Shown piece after piece: positions 9,001 through 47,640 of a stretch of 64,000 nucleotides of DNA. Position 1 is the first letter of the stretch. Each line of letters opens with the position of its first letter. The stretch is from Gracilinanus agilis (Eukaryota). The translations under genes were made by a program, and so were the position numbers. The stretch lies in NCBI RefSeq assembly GCF_016433145.1, contig NC_058135.1, forward strand, positions 106,927,860 to 106,991,859, written 5' to 3'. The notes below the pieces were generated by a model. That model had not been told where the DNA came from, searched no databases, and saw only the letters and a list, made by a program, of their open reading frames with translations.

Positions 9001-12000
9001 TCCAGGGCCATTAACCTCTAAATCCACTGAAAGTGCCATGAATGTCTTAATTTTCATCCCCCTCTTAATGTATGATTAAAATAGTTTCCCTTGGAATATC
9101 TGAAATACTTATTTTTTAAATAATGAACAACTTTTTCTTATTCACAGGAATAAGAAGTTGGAAGGAACCTCAGAAGTCATCTAGTACAAAAATTTCAAAC
9201 TCATGGCAAGGGCCACCAGAACCACTTGAAATGTAACTGGAAAATATTTAACAAAATAAATAGAATACATTACAAAATATATAGTATTAATTTGTGGTTC
9301 TCTGAGTTGATACACAGTCTTAGAAGTTCATTTCTATTTGAGTATTATACTACTGATCTGGTATAAATTCAGATTTAACAAGAATATATTTTTATAACAT
9401 CCCAAACAAGTGTAATATATGAAGAAGTACTGTATCATAAGCAACACAATGGGTTTGGAATAGGGAGCAGGAATATTAAAAGTAGTTAGATAATGAAATG
9501 GATGGAATGTTGTACCTGGAGTTAAGATAGTTTTGAATTCAAATCCTGTCACAGAAACTGACTAGCTATGTGTCTGAAGAGGTTATTTAATTTCTATGGA
9601 CCTCAGTTTCTTCATCTATAAAAATGGCTATAATAATGGTACTTAAAAATTTAACATGTCAAGTATTTGGCAAATCATAAAAACATTATATAAATGCTTA
9701 ATAAATGAAATAAGGAATCCTATATTTAATCAAAAGTATTATTTCAACTTTTGAAGGAAAATGAGCAGCTTGGAACAATATCCAAAGAAGACATAGAAGA
9801 TATTTTGATAGCCTGGATCATTTCAAGGGTTCAAAACAACATTATCTATTAAATGTCTCCAGTGAAGACAGTGCCAATAGGAAGTCAAAGGATGATGGAT
9901 TAAGAGCTGGAAGGAACTTTAGACATCCTCTAATACAAAGTCCTCACTTTCAGATATGCAAATTAAAGAACAAAAAGGTTAAATAATTTCCCCAAAGCTC
10001 CATAATTTATAATTAGTTGAATTAGGTATTTAACAAAGGTCCTCTAACTCAATTTCAATGCTCTTTCTATAGGAACCCTCTTGCATCATAGTCCACACAT
10101 AAATTAAGCCAGCTAGTAATCTTCCCTTTGATATAAAGGACATTTGCCCATTGCTTTCACACCCTTACTCCTGAGGCAAATTTCCTGAAACATATTCTCT
10201 GGACATGCATCAATCTAGTCCTCTAAGGAACTATCTCATCCAACATTCCTCCACCAAAACCTTCCTTTCTCCTTAGCTTTATCATATATATGCCTCTCTT
10301 TCCCCTTTTCTCTTGACTTTCATAACTCAATTCCATCAACAACAGCTTCTTTGTCTCAGAGACATATGAAAACGTTTTGTTCACCCCTCCCACCTTTTTA
10401 TATCTCTTCCAATTTTTCCCTCATTAATCATTTACCTCCTTCACATTATCTCCATGCTGTTTCCTTCTTGTATGGTGTCTCCTCCTGTTTCTCTTCCTCC
10501 TCCTCCTAAAAAAAAAATTGGTGCTAATCAAGACTCAGGCTAAATATTCCAGATATGGCTTTATTAATAATAAGAAGCACTATAAATTCAGAACTGAAAT
10601 TAGATATCATAAAGAGCTACCTCCATCTGCTTATAAATCATGTGAAAATGAGTACAGAAGTTCCTCCATTTATTTTTTTTTCTCAGCTACTAATTAAAAT
10701 ACTTTTCTTCAGATGTATATGTTCAAGATATATATTTTTTCAAACTACATTGCACAACTACTTTCTTCTTCACAAATTCACAGGTTTGGGGAAGTATCTC
10801 AGAAGCCATTTAGTACAATCCTACAACTGAAGCAGAAGCCTCTCCACATTGTCCTCTAAAGGTGACTACTTCAAGGCTTTGCTTGAAGACCTATGAAGAC
10901 AGAGATCCCAGGATTTTATTAAGCAATCTATCTTGGATAACTCTAACTCACAGGCCATTTTCCCTTACATGAATCCTTAGCTGGCTATTCTTTAACTTCA
11001 TCCACACTGCTCTTAGCTTTGTGCTCTGTGAAGTCCAAAAACAAAATCCTTCCAGTATGACATGCTATGGGAGAAAGTTGTAAGAAAAGGAATGAGAGAC
11101 AAAATAAATAAGGATGTGAGCCCAATAAGAAAAAGAAAATCATATAGATAACTTGAAGGATTTGGACTGTACAAGTAGGTCAGAAGTTGAATTTGAAGAG
11201 TAGAAATCTGAGAGAAATTGAGGGAAATTTGAAATAGAACAATTTCCTAAGTAACAATTTGGATTCTACTTCAGTGTAGAAAAAAGACCAAGATCAAAGA
11301 AAATTAGAAGTTATTAAAAAGATTATGGAGGATCATAAAGATTTAGAAAGCACAACCTAAAAAGGGAGATTAAAGGAGCAATAATTTGATGTCAATTAGC
11401 AAAATTAGGCAAAGGAAGGAAGGAAAAGTCAAATAATTCAAAGGAAAACAAAATTATGAAATGGGTTGCTGAATAGACCCAATGGGTGAATCAGATTTGA
11501 GCCCAAGGAAGGAGAATAGGTAGATATGTAACTGAGACCAATAAAAAGAAGCTTCATGGAGCTCTCAAGTTATTAAAAGGTGATAATTGTTTCTAAAATT
11601 TTAACTCCGTTCTTAGGGTTGAGTTGTAAATAACCACATGTGGTTAAAAACTATCTTTTTTAAGGTCTGGAAAACTCAAGTCATTAAGGAGAGTAAGGGA
11701 AATAACTTACATCTGCTCTGCAATGTTTCTTTTTCTATCCACAGCCAAATGATTATTTTCTGCATTCTAAGTTCATCACCCTCTCATAAAAGAAGGTGAA
11801 AGTACTGAAAGAACCTCTTTATACATGTTATATTGCTAAGGTGTTCCTAAATGAATCAGAGAGGAAACATCAGAGGGGGGGGGAAGTCCCTGTGAGATGG
11901 TCAATGGGAGATGACCCTTGTGTAGATGCTGGACAGAGAAAAATGTTGTACAGAAGAGAAAGGGAAAGAAAAGAATGTCTGTAAAATTAGAGCTTTAAAC

Positions 12001-12124
12001 CAAATTCAAAGTTTCTTTCTGGAGAAGAAGTTGCTTGCCCTCTAAAGAAGGATACAGCACAGTCCTAGGAGTTATCAGGTAAGAGATCGTTCACTAAGGG
12101 TCAGAGAAGGAAGAAAAGAGACTC

Positions 12125-14756
12125 AGAAGAGACTGATTCACTGCTCAGGGAAACTTAGACAACGATTTCTCAACCGGATAAGAAGAGAGAATTTTGTTTT
12201 CTTTTCAGGGAATGAGTCCAAGACATAATGGAGAACCTCCCAAGACTTATCAAAATGGATGGCAACTAGTCACTGATGGTTATTCATATGGGAGTCAGTG
12301 ACCCAGCCAAAAGAAATCTCAAAGACACTGCCAATGATTAGAAAGTCTTGGGCAAGAAACTAGACTGCTGGAGGTTGTGTTTCTCTTACCGTTGCCCACT
12401 GAAGACAGAGAAATGCAGAAGAGTAGAATTAATTTGAGAAGTGAACAGCTGGCTAAAAAATCCATTCTCTGAGAAAGGGATTTGGACTTCTGAAGCCTGA
12501 CTCAAAATACAGGGATGACAGATTCCTGGCCACAAATAGAGTACACACAATAAATTATGTATTTGCCAGGCATCCTGAAAAATCTAATCAAAATGGCTTT
12601 AAACTGAAAAGTAAAGGGGAGTGAGAATACGGCTCTGTATGTGCCTCAAGTCAGACACTACAGAGACTAGCTAGAAAGAAGAAAGCAGAAGAACAATCTG
12701 AGAACCACAAAAGTTCATAGGAGAAACGTTCCAAAAAAAGGAGCTGGAAGCAAAAACTATGAATTCAAATATTTATAAATGAATATCTCATGTATAGGCA
12801 AAAAAAAAGGAGGGGAAGTAGATGTCTTAATGGAAGGAGGTAAACTTGTCATCACAAGTTCTACTGAGACTTGGTGGGATAAATCCCATTACTGGATCAT
12901 GACTAAATGGGTATATTTGAGTCAAAATAAAAAAAAATATATATATATATATAGGGAAAAGTTGGAGAAGAGGAGAAGAGCATTATATATTAATAAGGTA
13001 TTTGAAGAAATTCAACAAGGAAAGAAAAGAAAAAGTATGACGGGAGTATTTAATTGAAAGTTAATGGAAGGAGAAAAAGAAGTGATTTTTTTTCTCATTG
13101 GAGAATACTACCAACCAGAAGGATTTGGAAACATCACAAGAGCATAGATATGTTAATATACAAAATAACTGGGCTTGCTTGTAAATTGTTTTAATTACTT
13201 TTAATACAAAGGTCATTTTCCTTGGCAGAGGAAATAAAAGCAAAATAACAACTGACCAGCTCTGTGTACTTTCTGTTATCAGTTATCATTGATAACTGAT
13301 ATATCATATATATATATATATCATATCATATATATATCATATCATAAATAATATTATCCTAACTTCCTAGAAAGCCTCATTTTCTATTCTCACTTTATAT
13401 GTAGAAATTTGCATAGATGTGTATAGTTTAAGATACGTATATGTATATTCTTAAATTCTACATCCACATATCCTTATAAATATACATCCCTGCATATCGA
13501 GTTGCCTATATTGCACTATGAATTTCTCTATATACATATATATTATACAGTGAAGGAATAGAAATTAAGTACAGCAAAAATAAGAGTGGGTTGTTTTGAA
13601 CTCTCTAGGGTATATAGCAGAATAATCGAAGGGGAAAAGAGCTAATTAGGCCAATTTTTATTTTGCTTCCTTGTTTTTTGTCAAAGAAAAACATTTTTTA
13701 AACCCTTACCTTTCATCTTGAAGTCAATACTGTGTATTGGCTCCAAAGCAGAAGAATGGTAAGGGTAGGCAATGGGGGTCAAGTGACTTGCCCAGGGTCA
13801 CACAACTGGGAAGTGCAAAGAAAATCATTTTTTACTTTTAATGAAATTAAAAATGACTAACAAGGAGTAGATAGCTAAGGCAAATGGGGAGGTAAGAAGA
13901 ACATGCCTAGCTGCTCTTGATGAATAAATTCCTTTGGTCCAAATGAACTCTGCAAGGCAGTCCTGAAAAGCCAAGGAGAGGTGGGGCTGAGATACTGCCA
14001 GTGATATCTGAATAATCTTGGGAAATAGGGGAAGTACGAGAAAATGGAAAAAGTGCAAATGTGTGTTACTCGTTTTCAAAAAAAGGGGAAGAGAATGAAT
14101 GGTATATGAAATAAAGTACAATAAACTACTCTTCAACTCCTGGGGAAAAATTCTAAAAAGAGTTATTAAAGAGATGGTCGGTGATTATCTAGAAAAGGAA
14201 ATGATGATTACAAAAGGGCCAACATACCTCTATCAAGAATACATTATGCCAAATCAATCTCCCTTCCTTATTTGATAGGATTGCTAAACAAAATAGAGGA
14301 GGGAATAATATTAGATTTTATCCTTTTCTTTTCTATACTAGTTTATAGAATTCAGATTAAAAAATCAGACACAAATAAATATTAGATGATAATACAATTT
14401 GATTAATTCAGACCTTGCTGAATAGTCAGACTCAAGGAGCAGTTAATATCTTAATGTTAAAGTAGAAGGTCTCCAGTGAGGTACTTAAGGGATCTGTGCT
14501 TGGTCTGTAATATTTAACATCTTTGCCAATGACTTGGATAAATGGATAGATGTTATAGTAATTAAATTTGCAGATAGCACCAAGCTGGGACAGCTAACAT
14601 ATAAGGGTAGAAGATAAAGATTTAAAAGGATCTTAGCAAACTAAGAAACTGGGGTGAATTTCACAAAATGAAATCCAATGGCCATGAATATAAAGTAACA
14701 AATAGGAACAAAAATCAACTTTATCAGTATAGGATAAAGGGAAGAATTTTATAGAA
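12125..14756 (+). mobile_element. L3/CR1 LINE, 5' part: ORF1 esterase relic, ORF2 endonuclease and RT
   Basis: Degenerate TDSLLRET...VQDIMENLPRLIK...VIHMGVSD (CR1 ORF1 GDSL/SGNH-like) at ~12130-12360; STETWWDKSH (CR1 endonuclease) at ~12860; GEV..W..ANV...FKKG-like RT segment at ~14025-14090; IKFADSTKLG at 14561-14590. Confidence 0.85.
13697..13816 (-). mobile_element. Truncated SINE1_Mdo-like SINE inserted in the L3
   Basis: CCCTTACCTT..ATCTTGAAGTCAATACTGTGTATTGG...GTGACTTGCCCAGGGTCACACA. Confidence 0.75.
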
Positions 14757-17700
14757 CAGTTGTTATGAAAAATATTTTAGTGAACTACAAGCTACAAGTT
14801 GATCTGGAAAAATTGGCCTAGAAATATTGTGGACTACAAATTGTTCTTTAAAAAAAAAGATCTAGGACCTCAGTGTATTACGAGCTATAAGTTATTATGT
14901 TAAAGAAGCTCTAGGAATTTAAAGGACAAGATACAAGTTGTTTGGGGTGGGGGCAGAAATTACAGGATTTTAATGGACTATAAACAACATATTGTTTTGA
15001 GAAAAAGAAAAGTTCTAAGATTTAACTGAACTATAAACTACAAATTTCGGGGCGGGGGGAGTCTATGATTTTAGTGGACTGAAAACTGCAACTTGTTTTT
15101 GGGTGGTGAAAAAGGTTGAGGAGCTAAGTGGGCCACAGGCTAAAGTTGTTCTGGAAAAAAATAGGTGGTTTTGGTGAACTAAAAAGCTACAAATTGCCTA
15201 GAAAAAAAAAAAGAAAAGAAAACAGCCTTGGATTTTAGTGGACTATAAGCTACAAGTTGTTCTGGATAATAAAAAGTCTAGGATTTCAGTAGACAATTCA
15301 GTGGTTACAAGTTGTCTTTAAAAAAAGTAGACAATCTAAGATTTTAGTGGATTAAAATTAAAATTTAAGATTTTGGTGAACTACTATCTACAAATTACTT
15401 GGGAAAAAAGTCTAGAATTTTAGTGGACTACAACCTAAAAATTGTTCTGAAAAGAAAAAAAAATTGTCTTGGGATTCAGTATATTACAAGTTATAAAATG
15501 TTTCAAAATAATAAGATCTAAGATCATGTTGGATTACCAGCTATCTTGAAAAAAAAAAGGGATCTAACATTTAATGCACTTCAAGCTACAAGTTATTCTA
15601 ATAAGAGGTTAAAAAAAGTAGAAAAAAAATTCAGGTTTTAATGTATTACAAGTTACATATTATTTGGGGGAAAAGAAGAAGTCTAGGGTTGTGTTTGACT
15701 ACAACCTACTAACTGTTCTGGAAAAAAGTCTACAAATTTAGTGGACTGCAATCTACATGTTGTTCTGGGTGATAAAAAAAAAAAAGCCTAGAATTTTAGT
15801 GGATAATTCAGTGGCTACAGAATGTCCTAAAAAGGGTGGGAAGATCCTGAGATTTTAGTGGGAAAAAAGCTACAATTTGTTCTGAGGGAACAAAAGGTCA
15901 AGAATTTTAGTAGACTACACACTCCAAGTTGTTCTGGAGAAAAAAAATTCTATTGAATTACAAGATATTCTGAAGACAATAAAAAATCTAGCACTAGAAA
16001 TTATTCTTAAAAAATGATGAAAAAAGGTCTAACATTTTCTTGGACTAGAAGTTGTTCAGAAAAATAAAGGAGATCTAGAATTTTAGAGGATGACAAGCTA
16101 CAAGTTGTTTGGGGAGAAAATTAGAATTTTAATGGACTAGAAGCCATAAGTTCTTCTAAAAAAAGGTGTAGACTTTTAGAAGGTTACAAGCTTCCAGTTG
16201 TTCTGGGGAGAAAAGCTCTAGTGAAATGCAACCTGTTCTGAGAATAAAAAAAAAAAAAAAAAAAAAAAAGGTTTAGCATTTTAGTGCATTACAAGTGATT
16301 CTTTAAAAAAAAAAGATGAAAAAAGTTATAAATTTTGTTGGACTACAAACTACTTTTAAAAAAAAAAACAGATCCAGGATTTTAATGCACTACAAGCTAC
16401 AAGTTGTGGATGACAACCTATAAATTATTCTGGGGAAAAAGATGGCTCCAATTTTGTACTCTACAAACTACAAGTTGTTGTGGAGAGAAAAAAAAAAAAA
16501 AGATGGTTTAGGGGGCATAAAACCCAAGTTACAAATTGCCCAAAAAAAAAAAAAACAAGTATAGGAATATAGTAGATCACAACCTAGAAATTATTTTAAA
16601 AAATGGCTCCAATTATTTTGGACTACAAACTACAAGTTGTTCAAGGAAGGATAGGTCTAGTGAATTGCAAGCTCTTCTGGAAAAAAATATTTTAGTTCAT
16701 TACAAGTTATTCTTTAAAAAAAGCTGAAAAAAAGGTATAAGATTTTGTTAGACTACAAACTGTTCAGTAATAAAAAGAGATCCAGGATTTTAATGCACTA
16801 TAAGCTACAAGTTTTTCTAGGAAAAAAAATAGGCCTCAGAGTTTGGCGGACTACAATCTATAAACTGCGTTCAAAAAAAGTCTAGAATTTTATTGGACTA
16901 CAACCTAAAAATTGTTCTGAAAAGAAAAAAAAATTGTCTTGGGTTTCAGTTAACAAGTTACAAACTGATTCAAAATAAAAAAGGTCAAAGATCTTGTTGG
17001 ACTACAAGTAATTTTGAAAAAAATATCTAACATTTTAATACACTTCAAGCTACAAGTTATTGTAAGAGGTAAAAAAAAAGTTGTGGAAAAAAATTCCAGG
17101 ATTTTAATGTACTACAAGCTACATATTGCTTGGGGAAAACAAAAAGTCTAGGATTGTACTAACCTACTAACTGTTCTGAAAAAAAAGTCTACAAATTTAG
17201 TGGACTACAATCTACATTTTGTTCTGAGTGATAAAAAATAAAAAGTCTAGAATTTCAGGGGAAAAATCAGTGAATACACATTGTCCTAAAAAGGATGGGA
17301 AGGTCCTGAGATTTTAGTGGAAAAAAAGCTACAATTTGTTGGTCAAGAGTTTTAGTAGACTACAAAATCTAAGGTGTTCTGGGTGAAAAAGTTCTAGTGA
17401 ATTACAAGCTTTTCTGAAGAAAACAAACAAAAAAATTTAGGATTTTAATGAATGAGAAGTTATTCTAAAAGAATGGTGAAAAAAGGTCTAGGATTTTTTG
17501 AAATAGAAGATATTCAGAAAAATAAAAAGATCTAGAATTTAAGTGGATGACAAGCTACAAGTTGTTTGGAGAAAAAGATTAGAATTTTAATGGACTAGAA
17601 GTCAAGTTCTTCTAAAAAAGGTCTAGAGCTTTAGTAGACTACAAGCTTCCAGTGGTTCTGGGGAGAAAAGGTCTAGTGAATTGCAACATGTTCTGAGGGA

Positions 17701-20700
17701 AAAAAAAAGGTCTAGCATCATAGTGCATTAAAGATCTAGCATCATAGTGCATTACAAGTGATTCTTTAAAAAAAGATGGAAAAATGCTAAGCATTTTGTT
17801 GGACTACAAACTATTCAGGAAAAATAAAACATCCNACAAGCTTCCAGTGGTTCTGGGGAGAAAAGGTCTAGTGAATTGCAACCTGTTCTGAGGGAAAAAA
17901 AAGATCTTGCATCATAGTGCATTAAAGATCTAGCATCATAGTGCATTACAAGTGATTCTTTAAAAAAAGATGGAAAAATGCTAAGCATTTTGTTGGACTA
18001 CAAACTATTCAGGAAAAATAAAACATCCAGGATTTTAATGCACTAGAATCTACAAGTTGTTGTGGTGGTGGTGGTGGGGTGGGTCGGGAATAGGTCTAGG
18101 ACTTTGGTGGACTACAGTATACAAATGGTTCTGAAAAGAAAAAAAAAGTCTTAGATTTCAGTGGAATACAAGTTACAAGGCATATTCAAAATAAAAAGGT
18201 CTAAAATATTCTTGGACTACCAGCTATTTTGGGGAAAAAAAAGATCTAACATTTTAATTCATTTCAAGCCACGAGTTTTTCTAATATGAAATAAAATTTT
18301 TTAGAAAAATGTTATCCTGGAAAAAATTCCCAGGATTTTAATAATTGTTTGGGAGAAAACAAAAGTTCTAGGCTTGTACTGAACTATCAACTACAAGTTG
18401 TTTTGGGGAGAAAAAAAAAGGTGGTTTGAGGGGACTAAAACTCAAGATACAAATTGCCTAAAAAAACAATCTAGGATTATAGTGGACTACAACCTAGAAA
18501 TTATCCTGAAAAACAAATTGGCTTCAATTGTAGTGGATTACAAATTACAAGTTGTTCTGGGTAGGAAAGGTCTAGTGAATTGCAAACTCTTCTGAAAAAA
18601 AACAAAAAAAGATGTAGGATTTTAGTGCATTACCAGTTATTCTGAAAAAAAAAAAGATGATAAAAAGCTCTAGGATTTTGTTAGACTACAAACTGTTCAG
18701 TAATAAAAAAGATATCCAAGATTTTAATGAACTACAAGCTACAAATTATTCTAAGAAAAAAATAGGTCTAGGAGTTTTGTGGACTACAATCTATAAACTG
18801 CCTTCAAAAAAAAAAAAAAGGCTAGAATTTCAGTGGACAAATCAGTGGTTACAGATTGTCCTAAAAAGGGAGGGAAGGTCCTGAGATTTTAGTGGAAAAA
18901 AAGCTACCATTTGTTCTGAGGGAACAAAAGGTCAAGAGTTTTAGTAGACTACAAATTCTAAGGTGTTCTGGGTGAAAAAGTTCTAGTGAATTGCAAACTA
19001 TTCTGAAGAAAACAAAAAAAATTTGGATTTTAATGCAGGAGAAGTTATTCTAAAAGAATGGTGAAAAAAAGGTCTAGGATTTTTTGAAATAGAAGATGTT
19101 CAGAAAAATAAAAAGATTTGGAATTTTAGTGAATGATAAGCTATAAGTTGTTTGGAGAAAAAATTAGAATTTTAATGGACTAGAAGTCACTAGTTCTTCT
19201 AAAAAAGGTCTAGAGCTTTAGTAGACTACAAGCTTCCAGTGGTTCTGGGGAGAAAAGGTCTAGTGAATTGCAACCTGTTCTGAGGGGAAAAAAAAGATCT
19301 AGCATCATAGTGCATTAAAGATCTAGCATCTTAGTGCATTACAAGTGATTCTTTAAAAAAAGATGGAAAAATGTCTAGCATTTTGTTGGACTACAAACTA
19401 TTCAGGAAAAATAAAAGATCCAGGATTTTAATGCACTAGAAACTACAAGTTGTTCTGGGGGTGGGGGGGTTTGGGGGGGAATAGGTCTAGGACTTTGCTG
19501 GACTACAGTATATAAATGGTTCTAAAAAAAAAGTCTTAGATTTCAGTGGAATACAAGTTATAAGGAATATTCAAAATAAAAAGGTCTAAAATATTCTTGG
19601 ACTACCAGCTATTTTGAAAAAAAAAAAGATCTAAGATTTTAATTCATTTCAAGCCATGAGTTTTTCTAATATGAAATAAAATTTTTTAGAAAAATGTTAT
19701 CCAGGAAAAAATTCCCAGGATTTTAATGTTTGTTTGGGAGAAAACAAAAGCTCTAGGATTGTACTGAACTACAAACTACAAGTTGTTTTGGGGATAAAAC
19801 AAAAAGGTGGTTTGAGGGGACTAAAACTCAAGTTACAAATTGCCTAAAAGAACAATCTAGGATTATAGTGGACTACAATCTAGAAATTATCCTAAAAAAA
19901 ATTGGCTCCAATTGTAGTGCATTACAAATTACAAGTTGTTTTGGGTAGGAAAGGTCTAGTGAATTGGAAGCTCTTCTGAAAAAAAAAAGATCTAGAATTT
20001 TAGTGCATTACAAGTTATTCTTTAAAAAAAGATGATAAAAAGCTCTAGGATTTTGTTAGACTACAAACTGTTCAGTAATAAAAAGAGATCCAGGATTTTA
20101 ATGCACTACAAGCTACAAGTTATTCTAGGAAAAAATAGGTCTAGGAGTCTGGTGGACTACAATCTATAAACTGCCTTCAAAAAAAAGTCTACAATTTTAG
20201 TGGACTACAATCTAAAAAATTGTTTTGAAAAGAAAAAAAAATTGTCTTGGATTTCAGTTGACGAGTTACAAACTGATTCAAAATAAATAGGTTGAAGAAT
20301 TTGTTGGACTACCAGTAATTTTGAAAAAAGAGAGATCTAACATTTTAATGCACTTCAAGATACAAGTTATTGTAAGAGGTAAAAAAATGTTGTAGGAAAA
20401 ATTGCATGATATTAATGTACTACAAGCTACATATTGCTTGGGGGGAACAAAAAATCTAGGATTATACTAACCTATTAATTGTTTAAAGAAAAGTCTACAA
20501 ATTTAGTGGACTACAATCTACATGTTGTTCTGCAGGATAAAAAAAAAAAGTCTAGAATTTCAGTGGACAATTCAGTGGCTACAGATTGTCCTAAAAAGGG
20601 TGGGAAGGTCCTGAGATTTTAGTGGGGAAAAAAAGCTACAATTTGTTCTGAGGAAACAAAAGGTCAAGAGTTTTAGTAGGCTACATAATCGAAGGTGTCC

Positions 20701-23700
20701 TGGGAGGAAAAGATCTAGTGAACTGCAAGCTATTCTGAAGAAAACAAAAAAAAATTTAGGATTTTAATGGAGGAGAAGTTATTCTAAAAGAATGGTGAAA
20801 AAAAGGTCTAGGATTTTTTGAAATAGAAGATGATCAGAAAAATAAAAAGATTTAGAATTTTAGTGGATGATAAGCTACAAGTTGTTTGGAGAAAAAAAAT
20901 AGAATTTTAATGGACTAGAAGTCACAAGTTCTTCTAAAATAGGTCTAGAGTTTTAGTAGACTACAAGCTTCCAGTGGTTCTGGGGAGAAAAGGTCTAGTG
21001 AATTGCAACCTGTTCTGAGGGAAAAAAAAAAAAAAGATCTAGCATTACAAGTGATACTTTAAAAAAAAAAAAAGATGGAAAAATATGAAGGATTTTGTTG
21101 GACTACAAACTATTCAGGGGAAAAAAAAAGATCCAGGATTGTAATGCACTAGAAGCTACAAGTTGTTTGGGGGGGGGGGTAAAAATAGGTCTAGGATTTT
21201 GGTGGACTACAATATACAAATGGTTCTGAAAAGAAAAAAAAAGTCTTAGATTTCAGTGGAATACAAGTTACAAGGCATATTCAAAATAAAAAGGTCTAAA
21301 ATATTCTTGTACTACCAGCTATTTTGAAAAAAAAAATCTAACATTTTAATTCATTTCAAGCCACGATTTTTTCTAATAAGAAATAAAATTTTTTAAAAAG
21401 TTATCCTGTAAATGTTTTCTGGATTTTAATGTTTGTTTGGGAGAAAAGAAAAGCTCTAAGATTGTACTGAACCACAAACTACAAGTTGTTCTGAGGAGGA
21501 AAGGTCTAGTGAATTGCAAGCTCTTCTGAAAGAAAAAAAAAGGTCTAGGATTTCAGTTCATTGTAAGTTATTCTTTAAAAAAAAAGATGAATAAAAGGTC
21601 TACGATTTTGTTAGACTACAATCTGTTAGTAATAAAAAGAGATCCAGGATTTTAATGCACTACAAGCTACAAGTCATTGTAGGGAAAAAATAGGTTTAGG
21701 AGTTTTGTGGACTACAAATCAATAAATTGCCTTTAAAAAAAATTCTAGGATTTTGGTGGACTACAATATACAAATTGTTCTGAAAAGAAAAAAAAGACTG
21801 TCTTGGATTTCAGTAGACTGCCAATTACAAACTATTTCAAAATAAAAATGTCTAAGTTCTTGTACTACTAGCTATTTTTTTTTGAAAAAAAAAAAGATAT
21901 AACAATTTAATTCACTACAAACCATGAGTTTTTCTAATAACTAAAAAAAAAGTTCTCCTGGAAAACATTTTCAGGATTTTAATGTACTAGAAATTACATA
22001 TTTTTTTGGGGGGAAAGAAAAGCTGTAGCATTGAATTGAACTAAAAACTACAAGTTGTTTTGGGGAGAAAAAAAGGTGGCTTCGGGGGACTAATACTGAG
22101 TTACAAATTGCCTAAAAAAATGTATCATTATAGTGGACTACAACCTAGAAATTATCCTGAAAAAAAAATTGGCTCCAATTGTAGTGGACTAGAAACTACA
22201 AGTTGTTCTGGATAGGAAAGGTCTAGTGAATTGCAAGCTCTTCTAAAAAAAAAAAAGATCTAGAATTTTAGTGCATTACCAGTTATTCTTAAAAAAAAAA
22301 AAGATGAAAAAAAGGTCTAAGATTTTGTAAGACTACAAAGTGTTCAGTAATAAAAAGATATCCAAGATTTTAATGCACTATAAGCTACAAGTTATTCTAG
22401 GAAAAAAAAATAGGTCTCAGAATTTGGTGGACTACAATCTAAAAATTGCCTTAAAAAAAGTCTAGAATTTTAGTAGACTACAACCTACAAAATTTTCTGG
22501 AAAAACAAATAGTATTTCTTTGGACTGAAAGCCTAAAGTTCTTTTAAAAACAGTCTAAAGTTTATGTGGACTACAACCTATAAGTTGATCTGGGAAGAAA
22601 AGGTCTAGTGGATTCCAAGCTGTTCTGAAAATAAAAAGGATTTCAGTGCTTTTTCAAGTTATTCTAAAAAAAGATGAAAAAAATGTCTAGGATTTTGTTG
22701 GACTGCATGCTATTCAGAAAAACAAAAAGATCTAGGATGTTAGTGCACTACAAATTACAAGTTGTTCTGGGGGGAAAGTTGGTCTAGGATTTTGGTGGAC
22801 TATACCTACAAATTTCCTGAAAAAAAAAAAAACAAAAAACAAAAACAACCACAAAACAGCTAGGATATTAGTGGACTGTAGTCCACAAAAATATCTGTTA
22901 TTTTGAAGCTGTTCAGGAAAAAAAAAGATCTTAGATTTAATACACTACAAGTTACAAGTTGTTCTGGGAGAAAAAAATGAGCCCAGGATTTTGGTAGATT
23001 ACAAACTAAAAAGTACTTAAAAAAAAAAAAAAGTTTAGAATTGTATTGAACTAGAATCTGCAAGTTGTTCTGAAAAGAAAAAAAAATCTTGGATTTCAGA
23101 GGACTCCAATCTATAAGCTGTTTTCAAAATTTAAAAAGTCTAAGATTTTGTTGGACTTCCAGCTATTTAAAAAAATCTAACATTTAATGCACTTCAATCT
23201 ACAAGTTACTCTAATAAGATGCTAAAAACAAAGTATAGGATTTTAGTGGACTACAACCTGTAAGCTGTTCTGAGGGGTGAAAGGTTTAGAAATTTTAGTT
23301 GCTTACAAGCTGTTACAAATAAAGTTCTAGGATTTTAGTTTACTACAGGCTACAATACAAGTTATTCTAAAAAAAAAGGTAAAAAAAGGTTTTAAAAGGT
23401 CAAGGATTTGGGGGGAGTACTTCCAAGCTGTTCAGGAAAAAAAAGAACTAGGATTTTAGCGTACTACAAGCTACACACTATGGATGAGAAAAAAAGGAAA
23501 AAAGTAAGAGAAGGAAAGGAAAGGAAAGGAAAGGAAAGGAAAGGAAAGGAAAGGAAAGAAAAGTTCTACAAAAAGCTCAGATTTTAGTGGACTACAAGCT
23601 ACAAATTATTATGGGACAAAAAGGGTCTGGGAATTCGGTGGACTATAAGCTCCAGGTTGTTTTTTTTTTGGGGGGGGGAGGTCTAAGATTTTAGTGGAGT

Positions 23701-24430
23701 ACAAGATATAAATTGTTCTTTTAAAAAATAGAGAAAGCTCTAAGGTTTTAGTGGACTACAAGGTGCAAATTGTCCTTTATAAAAAAAATCTCAGATTTTT
23801 GTGGACTACCAGGTGCAAATTGTCCTTTAAAAAAAAGGTCTAAGATTTTTGTGGACTACAAGGTGCAAATTGTTCTTTAAAAAAATCTAGGATTTTAGTG
23901 GACTACAAGGTGCAAATTGTTCTTTAAGAAAAAGGTCTAAGATTTTAGTGGACTACAAGGTGCAAATTGTCCTTTAAAAAAAAAAAGGTCTAAGATTTTA
24001 GTGGACTACAAGGTGCAAATTGTCCTTTAAAAAAAAAGGTCTAAGATTTTAGCGGACTACAAGGTGCAAATTGTCCTTTAAAAAAAAAAAGGTCTAAGAT
24101 TTTAGTGGACTATAAGGTGCAAATTGTTCTTTAAAAAAAAGGTCTAAGATTTTTGTGGACTACAGGGTGCAAATTGTCCTTTTAAAAAAATCTAGGATTT
24201 TTGTGGACTACAAGGTGCAAATTGTCCTTAAAAAAAAAAGGTCTAAGATTTTTGTGGATTACAAGGTGCAAATTGTTCTTTAAAAACAAATCTAGGATTT
24301 TAGTGGACTACAAGGTGCAAATTGTCCTTTAAAAAAAAGGTTTAAGATTTTTGTGTACTACAAGGTGCAAACTGTCCTTTAACAACAACAAAAAAAAGTC
24401 TCATATTTTAGTGGGCTATAGGCTACAAGT
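14757..24430. repeat. ~9.7 kb tandem array of a ~45-55 bp L3-derived monomer (about 180-200 copies, estimated from length)
   Basis: Consensus (A)nGGTCTAGGATTTTAGTGGACTACAAGCTACAAGTTGTTCT repeats throughout, with variable poly-A linkers. Confidence 0.97.
23511..23562. repeat. (GGAAA)n microsatellite inside the array
   Basis: About 10 AAGGA units. Confidence 0.95.
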
Positions 24431-25000
24431 CAGTCAGCAGTGAGATATGCAAGCCAAAAATTAATACTAACAGGCTTCATTAATGATGGCATAAATTCCA
24501 AGGATGGAGACATAATAATTCTCCTGTACTATATCCTAGTCCGATTTCATCTGGAGTACTGAGCTCTCTTCTGTGAGCCATAATTTAAGAAAAATATTGA
24601 TAAGTTTGAGAAAGTCCAAAGAAAGGCAACCAAAATGATAAAGAGTCTATTATGATACTTTAGTTCAAGTAACTGGAGATATCCAGCAAAAAAGTAGAAG
24701 AAATATGATAACTGCCTTAAGGTATATGAAAAGTTATCATTTAGAAGAAAAATTAACTTGTTCTTATTGACCTTTAAGTGCAGAATTAGGAGCAGTAGGG
24801 TAGAAGGTACAAAGAGGAACAATTAAATTTGATATGAGGGAAATTTTCCAAATAATCAGTGTAGGAACAAAAAATGGAACAGCAGCATTAATAATGGCTT
24901 GGAAGTGTTTAAGTAGTCCTTGGAAGTCTCTAAGTAGAAGCTGGATGAAGTGCTTTTTTTTTGCAAGGCTAAATGCTTCTAAATAAATGTTAACTATTAG
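24431..25000 (+). mobile_element. L3/CR1 LINE, 3' part resuming right after the array
   Basis: 24408-24458 translates LVGYRLQVSQQ*DMQAK (CR1 LVDxKLxMSQQC...AKKAN); CATCTGGAGTAC (HLEY) at ~24548; GAGAAAGTCCAAAGAAAGGCAACCAAAATG (E.VQR.ATKM). Confidence 0.88.
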
Positions 25001-25844
25001 TAATAGCAACATGATAATACTGGAGCCTTATTTCATATTTGAGTTGGACTAGAGAGCCACTGAAATCCCTTTTAATTTTCAAATTCTGTGATTCTGTAAT
25101 TCTATCATGTCTGTTTCCAGATTTCCTATATAATTTTGACCTCTCCTGCAAATATCCCTTCTACAGGCTTTCCCCATGCCTAGAACAGACTGTCTCATTA
25201 TTACCTACTAAAAATCTCTCTTTTCTTTCAAAGTCCAAATCAAATATGACTTCTTCTATGAAGCCTTCCTTGATTTGCCCAAATATAAAAGCCTCTACTC
25301 TTCCTTGAAAGCCTCAGAGCACTCTGTCCTCCCTTAGCCTTTAATCATTTTCTAATTGCAATGATTTAAAAAAAATTATTACTACTGTTCTCAGTCCCTA
25401 CTACTTAAGTAAGTATAAAGCCCCTTGGGGGAATCGGAGACTTCTTTTTGCCCCCCTATTTTATTTCCCCATCCCTTAACCCAGAGCCTTGCATAGAACC
25501 CAGTAACTTCATTCATGTTTGTTAAAATGAATTAGATTGAGTTGTCCAGTGTAAGAAGGCAGTGATGCCCTCAGGGGCAATTGAATTGTGAAAGGTTGCT
25601 TGCCCCTACACTAACTGGATAGCCCCCAGTCTGGTTTTTTTTTCCTTTTGAGCTCTTGCTTCTGAATTTATAGTTTTTCTGTCTCTTCTCACCATGTCAA
25701 ACCGTGAGACATTAGTTCTTGCTGTATGCCTCCCTCTAGTCCCCCTTCTCATTTGCTGCTCCTAATATATTGTACACTGGAAAAACAGATACTGAAGCTT
25801 GTTAGATCTATGTTTTAAATAAGTCTAAAAAGATTATAACAGAG

Positions 25845-26176
25845 GGACTCTGAGACTCTCTTCATGAATAAGGTGCATGAACTCTATTTCATTTGTTTTG
25901 GCTGGTTATAAGCCTTTTCTTGTTTATTTTCCTGTGTTCTGGATAATAGAAATTATTGGAAAAGTAATCTCGAGATGAGCAAAGTGTTGTTCTTTTCAAA
26001 ACCTACTCTCTTAGATCTTGCAATTCATGGCAAACTGGTGCATGTATTTCAAACATACATAAATATATATGTAAAACATGTACACATATAATATACATAA
26101 AGTTAAATTAAATTAAAGTATTATATGAAAGCCAAAGTTAAGCATGTTTTGAGAGTGAATAGTTGAGGTAATCAGG
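25845..26176 (+). repeat. ~330 bp dispersed duplication, copy 1
   Basis: Aligns by eye to 27500-27816 (shared ATAAGGTGCATGAACTCTATTTCATTTGTTTTGGCTGGTTAT...CATGTTTTGAGAGTG). Confidence 0.92.
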
Positions 26177-27499
26177 TAGAATAATTCTGGGTACTTGGGT
26201 TTATACTGAGAAAGAGGAAGCTTTTGGTTCATTAATTTATCTGAGAAATTTTCCTGGATGATGTGTGATACTTTAAAACAGAGTTTTTTTCATCTTTTTT
26301 TTGGTATTAGGTGTCCCTTTGGCAGTTTAATGAAATCTATGTACCTCTTCACAGAATAATGTTTGGAAAAGCATAAAATAAAACATATAGAATTACAAAT
26401 AAAATTAATTATATTGAAATCCAGTTATCAATTAAAAATGTTCTAGGACCCTACATTAAGAACTCTTGGCTTAAAATATGGACAGCAAATTCCTTATCAG
26501 GTTAGGTATGAGAGAATGGTGTTTTAGTCATATTATTTTGTAGAAGACTTAGAGGTAAAATGCTGAAGGAATCACAGAATCACAAACTCAGAGCTAGATG
26601 AGAAATTAGAAATAATCCACTTTAAAACACAATTTACAAATAAGGAAAATTCAGATTAAAGAGAGTAAAGTGTTTTGCCTGAAATCCAGGAGGGAATATA
26701 GTGGCAGAACTGAGAATTGAACTCAAAAAACTCAGACTCCAGCTATTGTGTTCTTTTCTAACTAAACCATGGGGTATCAAGGTCCAAAAGAGAGACAAAC
26801 TTACTTATATAACTCTCCTATATATTAAGAAGTAGTTGCACACTGCCTCCATACCCCTATGTTGCAGTCATTTTCCTCTAACCTACCCCTTCAAGCCACC
26901 AAGGAGCTATCTCATCTAACATCTTTTCCCTACTATCCTTTTTTCTGGAACAACAGGCACTCTCTCCTTGATAATTTAGTTGATTTCACCTTCAGTAATT
27001 TCTTTTCACACAGACACAGAGACTCTAGTAACAAACAGTCTTCCTTCTTTCTTTTATAACTAAATCTACTCCAGTAATCACCAGAAAATATTTTATCCTC
27101 TTTTCTCAGTTGTTCCATTTGTGATTCAAAAACAAACAAAAAGCATGCACATATGCATGCAAACATGTGCACAGTCCTATTCATAAGTGATAAACTAAGT
27201 GGCAGCAATGTTACTTTACTAAGAAAAAGAAGAGAAAAACTATTAAGTTATGAAGTGAAATCAGATATGATAAAGAGCCAGGGTTATCAATTTCTAAAGC
27301 CCTTAAAAGGGCTTGACAGAAGACTCCCCAAATCTTAATTTTTTAAAAAAAAATCTGTTCATTAAAAAGCTTCTGTTTAAGTGCAAACAGTGAAAAAAAA
27401 TTCTAATCAAAAAATTATTCAATTTTTTGATTAGTTTAATTTTTAGAACAGCCAGATTATCTATATTTTTTACTATAATATCATTCTATGTTACTAATC

Positions 27500-27816
27500 A
27501 GAGGGATTGAAACTCTCCTCATAAGGTGCATGAACTCTATTTCATTTGTTTTGGCTGGTTATGAGCCTTTTCTTGTTTATTTTCCTGAGTTCTGAATAAC
27601 AGAAATTATTAGAAAAGTAATCTTGATAGAAGCAAGTTGTTGCTGTTTACAAAATCTGCTCTCTAAGATCTCACAATGTATGACAAACTGATTTTTGTAT
27701 TTCAAACACATATAAATATATAAAACACATACACATATATAACAAAGTTAAATTAAAATATCATATGAAAGCCAAAGGTAAACATGTTTTGAGAGTGGAT
27801 AGTTGAGATAATCATG
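27500..27816 (+). repeat. ~330 bp dispersed duplication, copy 2
   Basis: Same orientation as copy 1, about 1.65 kb downstream. Confidence 0.92.
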
Positions 27817-29663
27817 ACTAAAGGGGTTTTGTTGATTAGCCCTTGGATACTAATTTATCATTTTTTTTGTCCTGTGAAAAATCTGTCTCTTTATCCAAAT
27901 AACTGATTTATAATTGAATATGTAAAAACACAGCTCATTTGTAGCTTGGAACTGCCTTTTAATGACCTATCCCTTGCCCTCAGTTAGATTATAATCTAAC
28001 TAGAGCTGTTATTCTCTAACCTTCATGAAATGAGTTTTTCTCTTCCACATTTCTTGTCCCTATTCAGAACATAGCTTGGATCAAACTTTCTTGTCTGCAC
28101 ACAAACACACACAATCCATGAGAATACAAAGTATGGAAATGAAGTTTTATAAGGAGAAACCCCCCAAGATATTAATTTCTCCAGCAAGGTACCAAAGTTC
28201 TCAGATATTTTGGAGAGAACTGGTCCTTTAAAAATCTGCTGGAAACAATAAAATAGCACATACCCAGTTCAGTCATCGTGTTCTGGCCATTTTAGTGATC
28301 CCTTCTGAGCTATTAGAAATGTCATGTAGAAGCATTGATTTTCATGTCTGTGAAACAAATGAAGGGTATACTTTTAAAAACAAATAAAACCTCACAGACT
28401 AATTCCAAAGATTAATGTTTGATGAATAGCACGAAGTGCTGAACATAGTAATAACACAATAATGTAAGGCTCAAGACTAGCAATTGACTCCCCTGAGGTT
28501 AGAGTCAAGCTTTGGTGAGTCACCATTACATTGGGCACTAAATGAAGATGATTTTTTTTTAACTTTTAGGAAGTAAACTTTACTTCTAGACTTGGCTGAT
28601 AAGTTTCTTAGGGTGATGTTATATACAAGCAAACTGGCTAATTCTCAAAGACATCATTCTTCTAATTGTCCATCTTAGGAAAACAACCTATAGTCAGGAA
28701 GACTTGGCTTCAAGACTTGTTTCTGATATATACCCCTTGCCTAAATGACTTTGCTAGGAGCTTCACCTCTAAGGGAGCTGGGGCAACTCTCTAAGACTGA
28801 GTTGCAGAGAAATTACAGATCTACATTGGTAGAGTGATGAAGCTGATAAAATCACTATTCCAGAAATAAAACCCCTCCTCAAAACAAACAAAAAACAAAC
28901 AAACAAAACACCGTTAAATTAATTTCTAAGTGTAGAGGAAGTGGACTTGATGGTCTCTCCACTGGTCATCTTGTTATCTAGGCATCTCTCTTTGCCTGTG
29001 ACAAATTCTCACCAGCCCTTGATCCTCTCCATTCCCTGTGCAAGATATATTTTGTATTAAAGCAGTAAAAAACAATAATATCATTATGATGACCAGATTT
29101 CATCCCCAATGTGTTCATATAGCCACTGAAAAATAAAGGGGATTTTAAAAATATGAATAACCTGTATCCTATGATTAGAAAAATATTTTTTTAAAAGTGG
29201 TTGTTGTTTTGTGAGTTTAATTCTAATAGATAACAGGGCAGCTTCCAAGATTTGTAAAGCTCCTAACTGTCTAAAAGTTGGGGATCAGTGTTATCAAAGT
29301 ACAAACATCTTTTGGATTTTTTCTTCAGGGTTACAAAACCAGACTGAGTCAGTTTTCTAAGACATTTTGTATTCCAATTATATATGGATACTTACATGAT
29401 GAATCTAAAAGGATATGAACGTTTGTGAAATGTGAATATGTATACTTGGTCACCCCAAAGGTTCTCTGAGTATTTTTTGGACTCAGAGAAACTTTTATAG
29501 GAGAGACAAAACAGAGAAGTCAGGGTGGAAATGGAACTTTCAGGACAGAATGACTCATGGAAACACAGTGAATGTTTATGGAACAACATTAAACAATTAC
29601 AGTGCAGTGTCCATCCTCTTTGGTGGGATAATACACTTGCTAAAAACACAAAGGAAATGGCTC

Positions 29664-29696
<33 letters not shown>

Positions 29697-30159
29697 TCCT
29701 GTACTCACCTCTGCAGGTAGGGCAGTGCTTAGGATGGGACAGCAGCAGTAGGCAATAGGGCATTGTCCTGGTGGTCTGTGGGCTAATCTGCATTTCTGTG
29801 CACTTTCTGTGAGGGGGAGAAGGAAGGCAACTGGGAAGTGTGCCCAGGTGCACTTGGGATCCTGAAAATTGTCCCCCTTTATTTTGGGAAGTCTTTGGAC
29901 CCACCACTAATCACATATTAGGCTTGTTTTCTCGGTCTCCTCCTAAGGTATTCATTCATTTAAAGGTAATAAAGTATTTGTAGCTGCTGCCTGGGGATCT
30001 TTTCCATTATCTATAGAGAACCTACAGGTTACCAGAGCCTAATGGCCACTTCTGATTAAACTCTCGAAGGGTGTTGAACCCAGACCAGCTAGCAACACCC
30101 GCTAGGGTTTTTCCAGTCCGCGGCCGTATCCAAACATTCACGGCCCACACTTTACCTGG

Positions 30160-32730
30160 GTGCCCCCAGCCTCACTTGAACAGAGAGCCAAGGAGAGCGT
30201 GCGTGCAAGGGAGCACCCAGCTTCACGAGCGCGCACACACACCAAGGAAGTGAGGAAAAGAGAATCAAAAAAGACCCCAGGCTCACACACTCAATGAAAG
30301 TAAAGTCAGAGTAAATAAAGTCCCGGGCCTCACTTACAGAGTAAGGAGGAGAGTCAGAGACCCCAGACTCACGCACGCGCGCGCGCACACGCACACGCGC
30401 ACGCTCAAAGGCGAGAGTAAGAGCAGGAACACACACCCCCTACCCCCACCCCCAGACTCACAAAGAAAAAGCGAAGCAGAGCCCCCATCCTCAAAGAGGT
30501 CGAGCGCCCCGCTTCATAAATTAATGCGGGAAAAGCTCCCCGGCCTCACAAACATAGAGAGATAGCCCGCGCCCAGGAGAGACCCTAGCTTCAAGCTCAT
30601 TGAGTATGCAGACAAGAGACCCCAGCCTCAGATGAAAAGATAAAGAGCGAGAACAGGAGAAATGCCCCAACCTCACAAGCAAATAAAAAGATCTAGAGCA
30701 AGAGAGAGACCCCGGCCTCAAAAGCACAGAAAACAAATAAGGAAAACAGTAAAGACCTCAGCTTCATGTACACAGATGAAGAACGCAAGCAGAAGACAGA
30801 CCCCAGCCTCACAAGCTAATAAAAAGAGTGAGAGCGAGAGCGAGAGCAGGAGAAAAACCCCGGCTTCAGGAGCACCGAAGGAAAAAAAAAAATGTATAGG
30901 GAAACAGACCCCAACCGCACCGCCCCCCCCCCCCCACACACACACACAGACGAAGAGTGCAAGCAGTAGACCCCAGCCTCACCTACAGAGGAAAAAAATA
31001 GGAGAGACCTCAATCTCATACATAGGTTAAGAGAGGAGGTAACAGACCCCGGGTCTTACTCGCAGAGGGGAGAAAAATAGGGAGACCCTAGCTTCATACA
31101 TACGGGGGCGGGGGGGATAAAAAACAAACACGAGAGACCCTACCCTCACACACAGAGAAAGGAGGGGAAAAAAAACAACTAGAGAGACCCCTGCCTCATT
31201 TGTCCACATAAAGAGTGAGAACGGGAGAGAGACCCCCAGCTTCACACGCACCGGGGAAAAATAAAAATAAAAAATAAAAACAGTTAAGACCCTCAGATTC
31301 ACAAGTAAAGAAAAAAATGTTTATACATATATATTTAAACAGGAGAGACCCCAACTTCACCCGCTACAAAAAAATAAAGAGCGAGAACTGGCAAAAAGAC
31401 CCCAATGTCATACACAGATAAAGAAGAAAAACAAGACAGACCCCAGCTTCACCACACACAGAGGGTGAGAGCCCACCACCTCATAAACAAACAGGGAGAG
31501 AGCCCCCAGCCTCACAAACACGGAAAGCTAGCGCTAAACACGCGCGCCGGGGAAAGCCCCCACCTCTGGCGCATAGAATTGGCAAGAGAGAGACCCCAGC
31601 CTCACACGCCCAGGTAAAGAGTGAAAACAGAGACCCCAGACTCACACTCAGATAAAGAAGGGAAGTAGGAGAAAGACCCGAGTCTCATGCACCCAGAGAA
31701 ATCGATCAAGAGAGACCCCATCCCCACACGCCGAGCGAAATAGAGAAAACAAGAGACCCCCCCAACCCCATATGCCCAGAAAAACCAAGAAACCAAAAGA
31801 GACCCCAGCCCCACACGCACAGATAAGAATCGAGACTAAGAGAGACCCCAGCCTCAAACAAACAAAGCGCGAAAACAAGAAAACAGGAAAGACCCCAGAC
31901 TCTCACGCACGGAGAAACAGCAAAAAAGCAGGAAAGCGACCCTAACCTCACTCGGAGAGACCCCAGCCTCACACGAACAAAGAGCCAAAGCGAGAGCACA
32001 GGAAAGACCCCAGTCTCCCACACAAAGAGCGAGAGCGAGCTGACAGGAGAGACCCTAGCCTCACGCACAAAAAGCGACGGCTGCACGGCAGGAAGAAGAG
32101 ACCCCAGACTCACACGCACAGAGAAAGAGCCAAAGCAGGGGACCCCAGCCTCACAAGCACAAAAAGCGGGAGCGGGAGCGCGAAAAAGCGTGAAGAGGGT
32201 AAAAAAAGACCCCAGCCTCACACGGACAAAGAGGAAAAGCGGGAAGATAAGAGAAAGAGACCCCAGATTCACACGCGCAGCGAAAAAAAAAAAATCAGAA
32301 GACCCCAGCCTCACGCACAAAAAGCGAGAATGAGCGAGCGAGAGACCCCGGCCTCGGTCGCAGAGAACCCAAGAGCAGAAGAGAGACCCCAGCCTCATAT
32401 GCAAAGGGAAATAGCGAGGGACCCCGGGCACAAGCACAAAGAGCTATCTAGCGAGAGGGCAGAGCCCCCAGTCTCCCAGGCAGGGAGAAAAAGCCAGCGA
32501 GATCAGGGGAAGAGACCCCAACCTCACCCTCCCCCTTCCCGAGAGAAAAGGAGAGCGGGTGAAAGACCCCAGTCTCCTAGATACAGAAAAAGATCGAGAA
32601 TGATATGGAAAAAAACCCTGGCCTCATTGACACAAAGAGTGAGAGCGACGGAGGAGAGCCCCCAGCCTCAATGGAACCAAAGAGCGAGAGCGGGAGAAAT
32701 CCCCCCCCCCTTCCGCTGCCGCCCCAACCT
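30160..32730. repeat. GC/CpG-rich array of ~55 copies of GAGACCCCAGCCTCAC with variable purine-rich spacers (Rsx 5'-repeat-like)
   Basis: Core motif every ~46 bp on average, counted by eye. On the minus strand the core reads GAGGC-TGGG-GTCTC and can form a hairpin. Many CpGs are retained. Confidence 0.95.
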
Positions 32731-33554: not shown

Positions 33555-33763
33555 AGTATGTATCTGAATACTAATACAGATCTCTATATACAGATAGAGA
33601 TGCTCCCCATTTTTCAAACCAATCTGTGTGTCTGTGAATACTAATATAGATCTCGATATACAGATATATAGATGCTCCCCATTCTTCAAACCAATTTGTA
33701 TGTATGTGAACACTAATATAGATCTCTATATACAGATCTACGTGCTCCCCATTCTTCAAACCA
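33555..33763. repeat. ~70 bp x3 minisatellite
   Basis: GAA(T/C)ACTAATA(C/T)AGATCTC...ATACAGAT...TGCTCCCCATT.TTCAAACCA at 33566, 33636 and 33708. Confidence 0.95.
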
Positions 33764-46559: not shown

Positions 46560-47640
46560 TTAGGTGACATATCATTAGAAAGGTCCAGAACTGGTTACAT
46601 GGCTGGATTTTTTTTTATAGTCATTAATGGTTTCATATCAACCTTGAAAGTTGTCTTTGGTTGAATGTCTTGGTGCCTTTGTGCTTGGTACTACTGTGTT
46701 GGGCATTTTTATCAATGATGTAGAATAAAGACATAGATGTTATGTGCATCAACATGTGTGTTAATATATGTACTATAAAATGTATATTAGATATGCATGT
46801 GATGTGGATGAACATATATTAATACTCAAAATTCATGCATTATGCTTATTAAATTTGACAATGATTCAACTTTAGGAAGAATAAAACCAATATCCTAGAT
46901 GATAGTCAAGAGGCAAAAATTTCTAAACACACAGAAATAATAAGCAAAATCTAAATGAGATGATGTTTCATATGGGAGAATGAAAGTCTTATAATATCAC
47001 ATCAGCTCCACAAAAACAAAATGGGACAGGTTAGGGTCAGAGAGAAGTCTTTCTGAAAAAGATTTGTGGGTTTTAATGAACCACAAGCTCAAAATAAGTT
47101 GACAACATCATATAGCATTTTAAAAGGTCCCTAGATGACTAGAGCTACTAGTTCCCCAGGATTATGCTCTGACCAGACCATATCTGTAATATTGTGTCCA
47201 GCTTGAGACATACAGTGTTAGGAAGACTAATAATCTTGAGAACTAGTCTGTTCCAAAGAAGGGTCAGTTGAAGGACCTGGCAGTCTTTTGCCTAGAAATT
47301 ATAGGGAATTATAGGGAATTATAAGGAAATTATAGCTGTGTTTGCTTGGAAGATTGTTATGTGAAAATGAGATTACATTTGTTCTTACTGTCTCCAGGAG
47401 GTAGAATTAAGTAAGAATAATGGGTGAACATTGCAAAGAGACAGATTTGGGCTTGAAGTAAAGAAGAAGCTTCCTTTATAATTAGAATTATACTCAAGTG
47501 AAATGATAGGTATTTAAATTTTGAATGTTTCCTTATAAGGTAATGAGATTTCCTTCAATGGAAATATTCAAGAAGCAAAATGGATGGATGACCATTTCTC
47601 CCATGAGTGGTAGTGGACATTCATTTGAGGGGACAGGGTA
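46560..47640 (+). mobile_element. L3/CR1 RT and 3' fragment
   Basis: 47055-47099 translates EKDLWVLMNHKLKIS; GACCAGACCATATCTG.AATATTGTGTCCAG (RPHLEYCVQ-like) follows. Confidence 0.8.

Follow-up and report, generated by a model that had tools for sequence, protein, structure and literature searches.

A 9.7-kb head-to-tail tandem array on the plus strand of the Gracilinanus agilis genome (positions 14757–24427 of an analyzed 64,000-nucleotide stretch of contig NC_058135.1, hereafter the window) is, with a confidence approaching certainty, the product of in-place amplification of ~48 bp of the reverse transcriptase (RT) segment of an ancient long interspersed nuclear element (LINE) relic of the CR1/L3 type. 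The complete interpretation that we favor, with an estimated probability of roughly 0.8, further includes the location of this array within an intron of a minus-strand gene as well as its selective neutrality. A preliminary description of the same DNA had proposed the in-place amplification, and a direct check located all of its quoted strings and coordinates in the sequence (CAGTTGTTATGAAAAATATTTTAGTGAAC at 14757; IKFADSTKLG at 14561; LVGYRLQVSQQ* at 24408, followed by HLEY and EKVQRKATKM). The proposed origin has held up in both of its components, namely the adjacency of the flanks on the same strand (as established by tblastn) and a similarity of the unit to L3 far above that of shuffled sequence.

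Judged by protein-level similarity, the flanks of the array are two arms of one CR1-clade (L3-type) LINE relic, collinear with the reptile CR1 open reading frame (ORF) 2. A CR1 ORF2 fragment from Podarcis (P0035) aligns with the left arm by residues 17–44 (14507–14590) and 53–107 (14611–14772) and with the right arm by residues 120–193 (24428–24649) and 212–233 (24684–24749). These tblastn segments all lie in order on the plus strand, and their linked E-values amount to 2e-9 and 6e-13. An Apteryx CR1 fragment pushes the left arm back to 13986 (P0063 residues 19–112 at 13986–14276). The decayed left arm (13986–14756, plus strand) reads from ..SWxxGEVPEDWK.. via FADD.. to ..SSxx, and the right arm (24428–24749, plus strand) continues as ..SQQC..LYxxLVRPHLEY..EKVQRKATKM..RRxMI, with weaker L3-like sequence beyond it up to ~24950. 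Thus, the left arm stops at ORF2 residue 107 and the right arm restarts at residue 120, while the twelve residues between them (108–119, DLGVLVDHKLDM) are encoded by the edge units of the array (first unit 14757–14803, last unit 24385–24427, plus strand), both of which run on into the L3 arms. Collinear arms and edge units together account for the entire segment, with no L3 sequence lost at the array site. Flanks mapping to non-adjacent or opposite-strand L3 coordinates had been named in advance as a potential argument against this origin; the arms proved to be adjacent and on the same strand.

The tblastn references were CR1 ORF2 fragments of Podarcis, sea turtles, Apteryx, and others, carrying the Pfam domain RVT_1. 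The single stop-free RT piece of the relic (42 aa, 14489–14614) retrieved fragmentary CR1-type ORFs in an exhaustive protein search, and a second search seeded with an Anolis fragment (P0014) yielded more than 4000 CR1 ORF2 fragments of lizard, turtle, and bird origin, each with RVT_1; ten CR1 fragments covering FADD..EKDLG..LEYC..VQRRA were used against the window. A tiny second tandem duplication (21 bp x 2.2, 24898–24945) was observed within the right-arm L3 relic, covering the ..SLEVFK.. codons close to the end of ORF2, and a further decayed CR1/L3 RT relic is located on the minus strand at 35517–35334.

The array unit, with the consensus CAAGTTGTTCTGG-(A)n-GATCTAGGATTTTAGTGGACTACAAGCTA, corresponds to the L3 codons ..SSxxEKDLGVLVDxKL. 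At the DNA level, L3 homology was judged against CR1 DNA of Podarcis (L001) and sea turtle (L002) and against an independent L3/CR1 relic within the window (46675–47578, plus strand, detected by tblastn and the unit profile) rather than against a curated consensus. The in-window relic holds an unexpanded ..SEKDLWVLMNHKL.. at 47056–47089, and its EKDLWVLMNHKL segment served as an in-genome control. A 50-nt profile hidden Markov model (HMM) made from 32 well-spaced units has its best match at the EKDLGVLVDxKL codons in all three DNAs (window 47056–47089, L002 645–662, and L001 615–647). Local alignment of the consensus unit with the three references gave scores of 21, 19, and 20 on the plus strand vs. 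9–12 on the minus strand, and not one of 1000 dinucleotide-preserving shuffles reached the observed score (shuffle means 11–12, standard deviation ~1.4, maxima 16–18). A monomer matching L3 no better than shuffled sequence, the other potential argument against the origin, is therefore not what is observed.

A multiple alignment of the junctions places the array unit opposite turtle CAGCAGTTCTGCAGAAAAGGACCTAGGGGTTACAGTGGACGAGAAGCT and reveals that the interior consensus has kept GATCTAGG (Asp-Leu-Gly), since lost from both edge units. A copy-specific state, AAGCT-ACAAGT, is common to the units and the right flank and absent from the reference elements, which argues that the units descend from this very L3 copy. 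Units are delimited at CA(A)GT, a string that the parent carries at both ends of the amplified segment (..GAACAGT|TGTTATG.. and ..CTACAAGT|CAGTCAG..), which suggests a microhomology-mediated first duplication.

The array comprises ~170–190 diverged units with a median length of 51 bp. Application of the unit HMM to the whole window detected 172 units on the plus strand between 14774 and 24431, spaced at a median of 51 bp, with the largest gap between units at or below 130 bp, i.e., an array free of foreign insertions. The only off-array plus-strand match of comparable strength in the rest of the window is the unexpanded segment of the other L3 relic at 47056–47089. The GC content (0.30–0.32), GC skew (~+0.25), and AT skew (~+0.16) are maintained throughout the array and shift sharply at each of its ends. 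Across the units, nothing but the TTTTAGTGGACTACAAG core and the A-run can still be recognized, the remainder drifting freely, and because of this high divergence Tandem Repeats Finder recovers the array piecemeal only. As had been proposed, the A-run represents the expanded Glu-Lys codons of EKDLGVLVDxKL; its length varies from 4 to 24, consistent with slippage in these codons. A perfect small palindrome (AGTGGACTGTAGTCCAC, 22870–22886) lies within one array unit and gives the unit profile its sole minus-strand match with a meaningful score. A full-text literature search with strings of the unit and of the hairpin motifs returned unrelated primers only.

Internal comparisons reveal that the array has grown in stages. 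The mean identity of units in unit-by-unit global alignments is 0.62 at every lag, with no decay over distance, yet for 70 of the 135 units that could be cut cleanly, a partner of 90% identity or more is found kilobases away. By self-megablast, 80% of the array is contained within internal duplicates of at least 150 bp, and block shifts of ~1.39, 1.47, 1.58, and 1.73 kb and multiples thereof are observed. Blocks of 0.5–1.3 kb, with copies 80–93% alike, form a higher-order repeat zone at 15368–22509 (plus strand, from self-megablast and unit identities), and a younger, homogeneous block of ~14 units of 50 bp, 86–88% alike, occupies 23679–24420 (plus strand, from Tandem Repeats Finder and self-megablast). 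This pattern of identities and internal duplicates points to an old array of ~30 units that diverged, followed by about five-fold copying of a ~1.5-kb block and a burst at the right edge. Thus, the ~200-fold expansion of the preliminary description is correct as a unit count, although it was not reached in a single step, given the higher-order copies and the younger block.

A lone N at 17835 marks the exact boundary between two 194-bp copies of 97.9% identity (17641–18028); instead of a true duplication, the pair may represent an overlap that the assembly failed to merge. Such a resemblance could be extended to the notion that the array, or most of its length, is an assembly artefact from an over-expanded short repeat. 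We consider this to be exceedingly improbable: the units and higher-order copies are 7–38% diverged, a divergence that assemblers do not invent, the junctions of the array with L3 are clean on both sides, and 68% of the sampled 31-mers of 14600–24560 are present in a same-species read set.

The transcriptional context of the array is derived from a neighboring GC-rich and CpG-rich array (30160–32730), in which 38 GACCCCAGCCTCA-type units, their motif on the plus strand, are separated by free spacers of 21–161 bp. The minus-strand ORF of this GC-rich array retrieves a single database protein, P0138 (UniParc UPI0004433312, 309 aa), with no Pfam family and no homologue (in Pfam, ESM Atlas, and the protein database), which therefore resembles a fortuitous ORF of a non-coding RNA. 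Exact look-ups of the window ORFs and of P0138 in assembled contigs returned no record. Pieces of P0138 map in order on the minus strand of the window. Residues 19–106 (32206–31947, nearly identical) correspond to part of a first exon inside the GC-rich motif array, with a GT donor at 31946–31945; residues 102–136 (29819–29715, 80% identical) correspond to an internal exon of 98 nt (29709–29806) with the acceptor ..CCTCACAG| and the donor GAG|GTGAGT; and residues 139–157 (10505–10449, 84% identical) correspond to an exon of 70 nt (10436–10505) with a T-tract and AG acceptor and a GGAG|GTAAAT donor, while the remaining residues fall outside the window. The ordered matches and the retained canonical splice sites suggest that the spliced minus-strand model of the relative applies here. 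The predicted 19.2-kb intron (10506–29708, minus strand; GT at 29708–29707, AG at 10507–10506) holds the whole L3 relic with its array in antisense orientation. In this model, the first donor GT is created within one GC-rich motif unit. The putative transcript would extend from window position 33400 to below position 1, with later exons past the left edge of the window; a 72-bp x 2.9 tandem repeat (33556–33763) lies just upstream of the presumed start of this gene.

Thus, the array is probably intronic in an apparently non-coding minus-strand gene, a conclusion supported indirectly by the ORF-derived model of a relative and by the splice sites in the window. Four sequencing runs over 24380–30300 behave like whole-genome DNA, with uniform depth (~25 in the best of them), no strand information, and no credible splice joints. 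Reads of a related species cover much of 24549–30300 at ~90% identity, the right L3 arm included. A search of the whole window against Rfam at the gathering threshold gave no match. Elsewhere in the window, a purine-rich low-complexity tract, (GAGAA/AGAGG)n, of ~470 bp was observed at 39816–40288.

Combining these observations, the history of the locus may be reconstructed as follows. An ancient CR1-clade (L3-type) LINE copy lies antisense within the probable 19-kb intron of a spliced, apparently non-coding gene on the minus strand, and a ~48-bp piece of its RT ORF (Ser-Ser-x-x-Glu-Lys-Asp-Leu-Gly-Val-Leu-Val-Asp-x-Lys-Leu) was duplicated head to tail. The short homology CA(A)GT present at both ends of the segment most likely allowed the first duplication, through slippage or unequal exchange. 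Growth then proceeded in stages, presumably through unequal exchange: an old set of ~30 units, since drifted to ~62% identity, was followed by about five-fold copying of a ~1.5-kb block of units and by a later local burst of 14 units at the right edge, while slippage would have lengthened the Glu-Lys A-run throughout the array. We infer that the resulting array is a selectively neutral intronic minisatellite without a function of its own.

Several considerations weigh against this interpretation. The underlying transcript model comes from the database ORF of a relative (UPI0004433312), and unspliced or alternative isoforms may retain the array. The subfamily placement is L3-type by comparison to reptile CR1 rather than to a Dfam or Repbase consensus. 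Finally, neutrality is adopted here as a default assumption.

With respect to the latter, the array could instead be a functional RNA or DNA element of its putative host gene. Read antisense, it provides U-tracts, as had been suggested: 126 runs of at least six T are found on the transcribed strand within 9.7 kb (13 per kb, compared with 1.8 per kb over the remaining intron). Whether in the pre-RNA or in an isoform that retains the intron, these ~126 U-tracts could bind U-tract or pyrimidine-tract proteins such as hnRNP C, PTBP1, or U2AF, and such an array could slow or regulate the splicing of the 19-kb intron. Its persistence until the units had diverged to 62% identity, followed by renewed enlargement, may be viewed in the same light, yet expansion and persistence are also what is expected of neutral minisatellites. 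The free drift of the units beyond the TTTTAGTGGACTACAAG core and the A-run is hardly suggestive of constraint, and a role of the antisense unit as a decoy 3' splice site was dropped, given that CAG follows a T-run in only 21 units. A functional role is thus regarded as unlikely, and the neutral intronic minisatellite remains the preferred interpretation.

The preliminary description had raised the possibility that the locus is Rsx, in which case the array read antisense would be one of the Rsx repeat domains and would reveal a LINE origin of a functional domain. Rsx is 27–30 kb long and consists nearly entirely of four tandem domains, of which repeat 1 (13 kb in koala) is conserved between koala and opossum and repeat 4 is reported to be rich in U-tracts (PMC6633197). 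The opossum Rsx contains more than 100 copies of the 12-nt purine (AG-12) motifs AGGAAGAAGGGA / AGGAAGAGGGGA within 34/35-nt repeat-1 motifs, and its pyrimidine motifs do not exceed 10 nt (PMC6664574). Some features of the window are reminiscent of this organization: a CpG-rich motif array (30160–32730) adjoins a large second array, the antisense strand of the latter is rich in U-tracts as in repeat 4, and one unit of the GC-rich array resembles opossum RSX repeat-1 oligonucleotides. The oligonucleotides compared were seven chromatin isolation by RNA purification (ChIRP) probes and two quantitative PCR (qPCR) primers (PMC11112854 supplement 1; PMC12221971). At 32081–32112 of the plus strand, the reverse complement of an RSX repeat-1 ChIRP probe and the forward qPCR primer overlap in a composite match of ~31 nt with ~6 edits, which is confined to one of the 38 GC-rich units. 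By sequence comparison, this likeness is probably real, and the motif of the GC-rich array may be related to that of Rsx repeat 1 despite lying outside Rsx.

Other observations are difficult to reconcile with Rsx. The RSX-like unit shows its similarity on the plus strand, whereas the proposed transcript would come from the minus strand. For six of the seven ChIRP probes and for the reverse primer, no credible match was obtained in the window. No exact copy of the AG-12 motifs is present in the 64-kb window, nor do they cluster there; at up to one mismatch, two matches are found, at 32090 (in the GC-rich array) and 62784 (outside it). A k-mer self-comparison of the window detects two tandem domains only (14.7–24.5 and 30.1–32.7 kb, in total 12.3 kb, with 5.7 kb of unique sequence between them), as opposed to the four that fill most of Rsx. 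The composition of the array fits the opossum motifs in neither orientation, the pyrimidine motifs being limited to 10 nt and the purine motifs being of another type (PMC6664574). The array is also intronic in the only transcript model. The assembled piece bearing the window includes sites 114,499,124 and 171,741,796 letters past the window end, so that it runs at least 171.7 Mb beyond the window. Known marsupial X chromosomes measure ~80–100 Mb, and the locus is thus most likely autosomal. No link between Rsx and CR1/L3 was found in the literature searched. Taken together, the absence of exact or clustered AG-12 motifs, two domains instead of four, a piece longer than known marsupial X chromosomes, and a probably intronic array speak against the Rsx context once suggested, and we regard the identity of this locus with Rsx as very improbable. 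Since the locus fails those Rsx tests that could be run, the array says nothing on the origin of Rsx repeat domains.

A related scenario, in which the host gene would be an undescribed autosomal non-coding RNA related to Rsx, with 38 GACCCCAGCCTCA-type units in its first exon, one of them resembling opossum RSX repeat-1 oligonucleotides, and with intron-retaining isoforms using the L3-derived, U-tract-rich array as a protein-binding repeat domain, appears improbable as well. If true, it would provide a concrete case of a LINE coding fragment turned into a functional repeat module within a long non-coding RNA.

The neutral intronic minisatellite favored here can be compared with several known systems. 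Among human minisatellites and satellites, 23% are derived from transposable elements (TEs), expanding by local duplication (Ahmed and Liang, 2012, PMC3389668). The array shares with these TE-derived minisatellites the duplication of a segment inside a TE copy followed by local expansion, and the larger number of units carried by older elements may be listed as a further likeness; it differs in its unusual length (9.7 kb, ~180 units), in its source, which is a very old CR1/L3 relic and not a young active element, and in that both parental flanks are still readable. LINE-ORF2-derived satellites have also been tabulated, including the chicken HinfI/SCR1 repeat (CR1 3' untranslated region and partial ORF2) and the L1 ORF2-derived PROsat of Phodopus and Pvc20 of harbour seal, which are similar to the present array in that the unit stems from coding sequence of a LINE RT ORF, in one case that of CR1 (PMC9659126). 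In contrast to HinfI/SCR1, PROsat, and Pvc20, the 48–51-bp unit is here still located inside its parent copy at one locus. These three form satellite families that have long units and are either dispersed or of chromosome scale, whereas no spread of the unit of this array is seen within the 64-kb window. The suggestion that this origin might not have been described before was, therefore, too strong, as LINE-ORF2-derived tandem repeats are documented (PMC3389668, PMC9659126). The TE-derived tandem repeats of Xist (PMC12101419) and the domains of Rsx (PMC6633197) offer a third comparison: as there, the array lies in the transcribed span of a putative non-coding gene, the first exon carries a GC-rich repeated motif, and the array is U-rich on the transcribed strand; unlike there, the sole transcript model puts it in an intron, the locus is apparently autosomal, and the defining Rsx repeats are absent.

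Overall, the array stands as a long, well-preserved, and clear example, apparently confined to one locus, of a known process, the formation of tandem repeats from TEs. Its origin accounts for 9.7 kb of sequence to which repeat maskers would probably assign the label of an unclassified satellite. The combination of the neighboring GC-rich array, the putative spliced non-coding transcript, and the RSX repeat-1-like unit may merit a separate study. The birth of a minisatellite is legible at this one locus, with the parent L3 copy, the 48-bp source, the microhomology at its ends, and three modes of growth, which makes it a possible teaching and benchmark case for the annotation of TE-derived tandem repeats in marsupial genomes.

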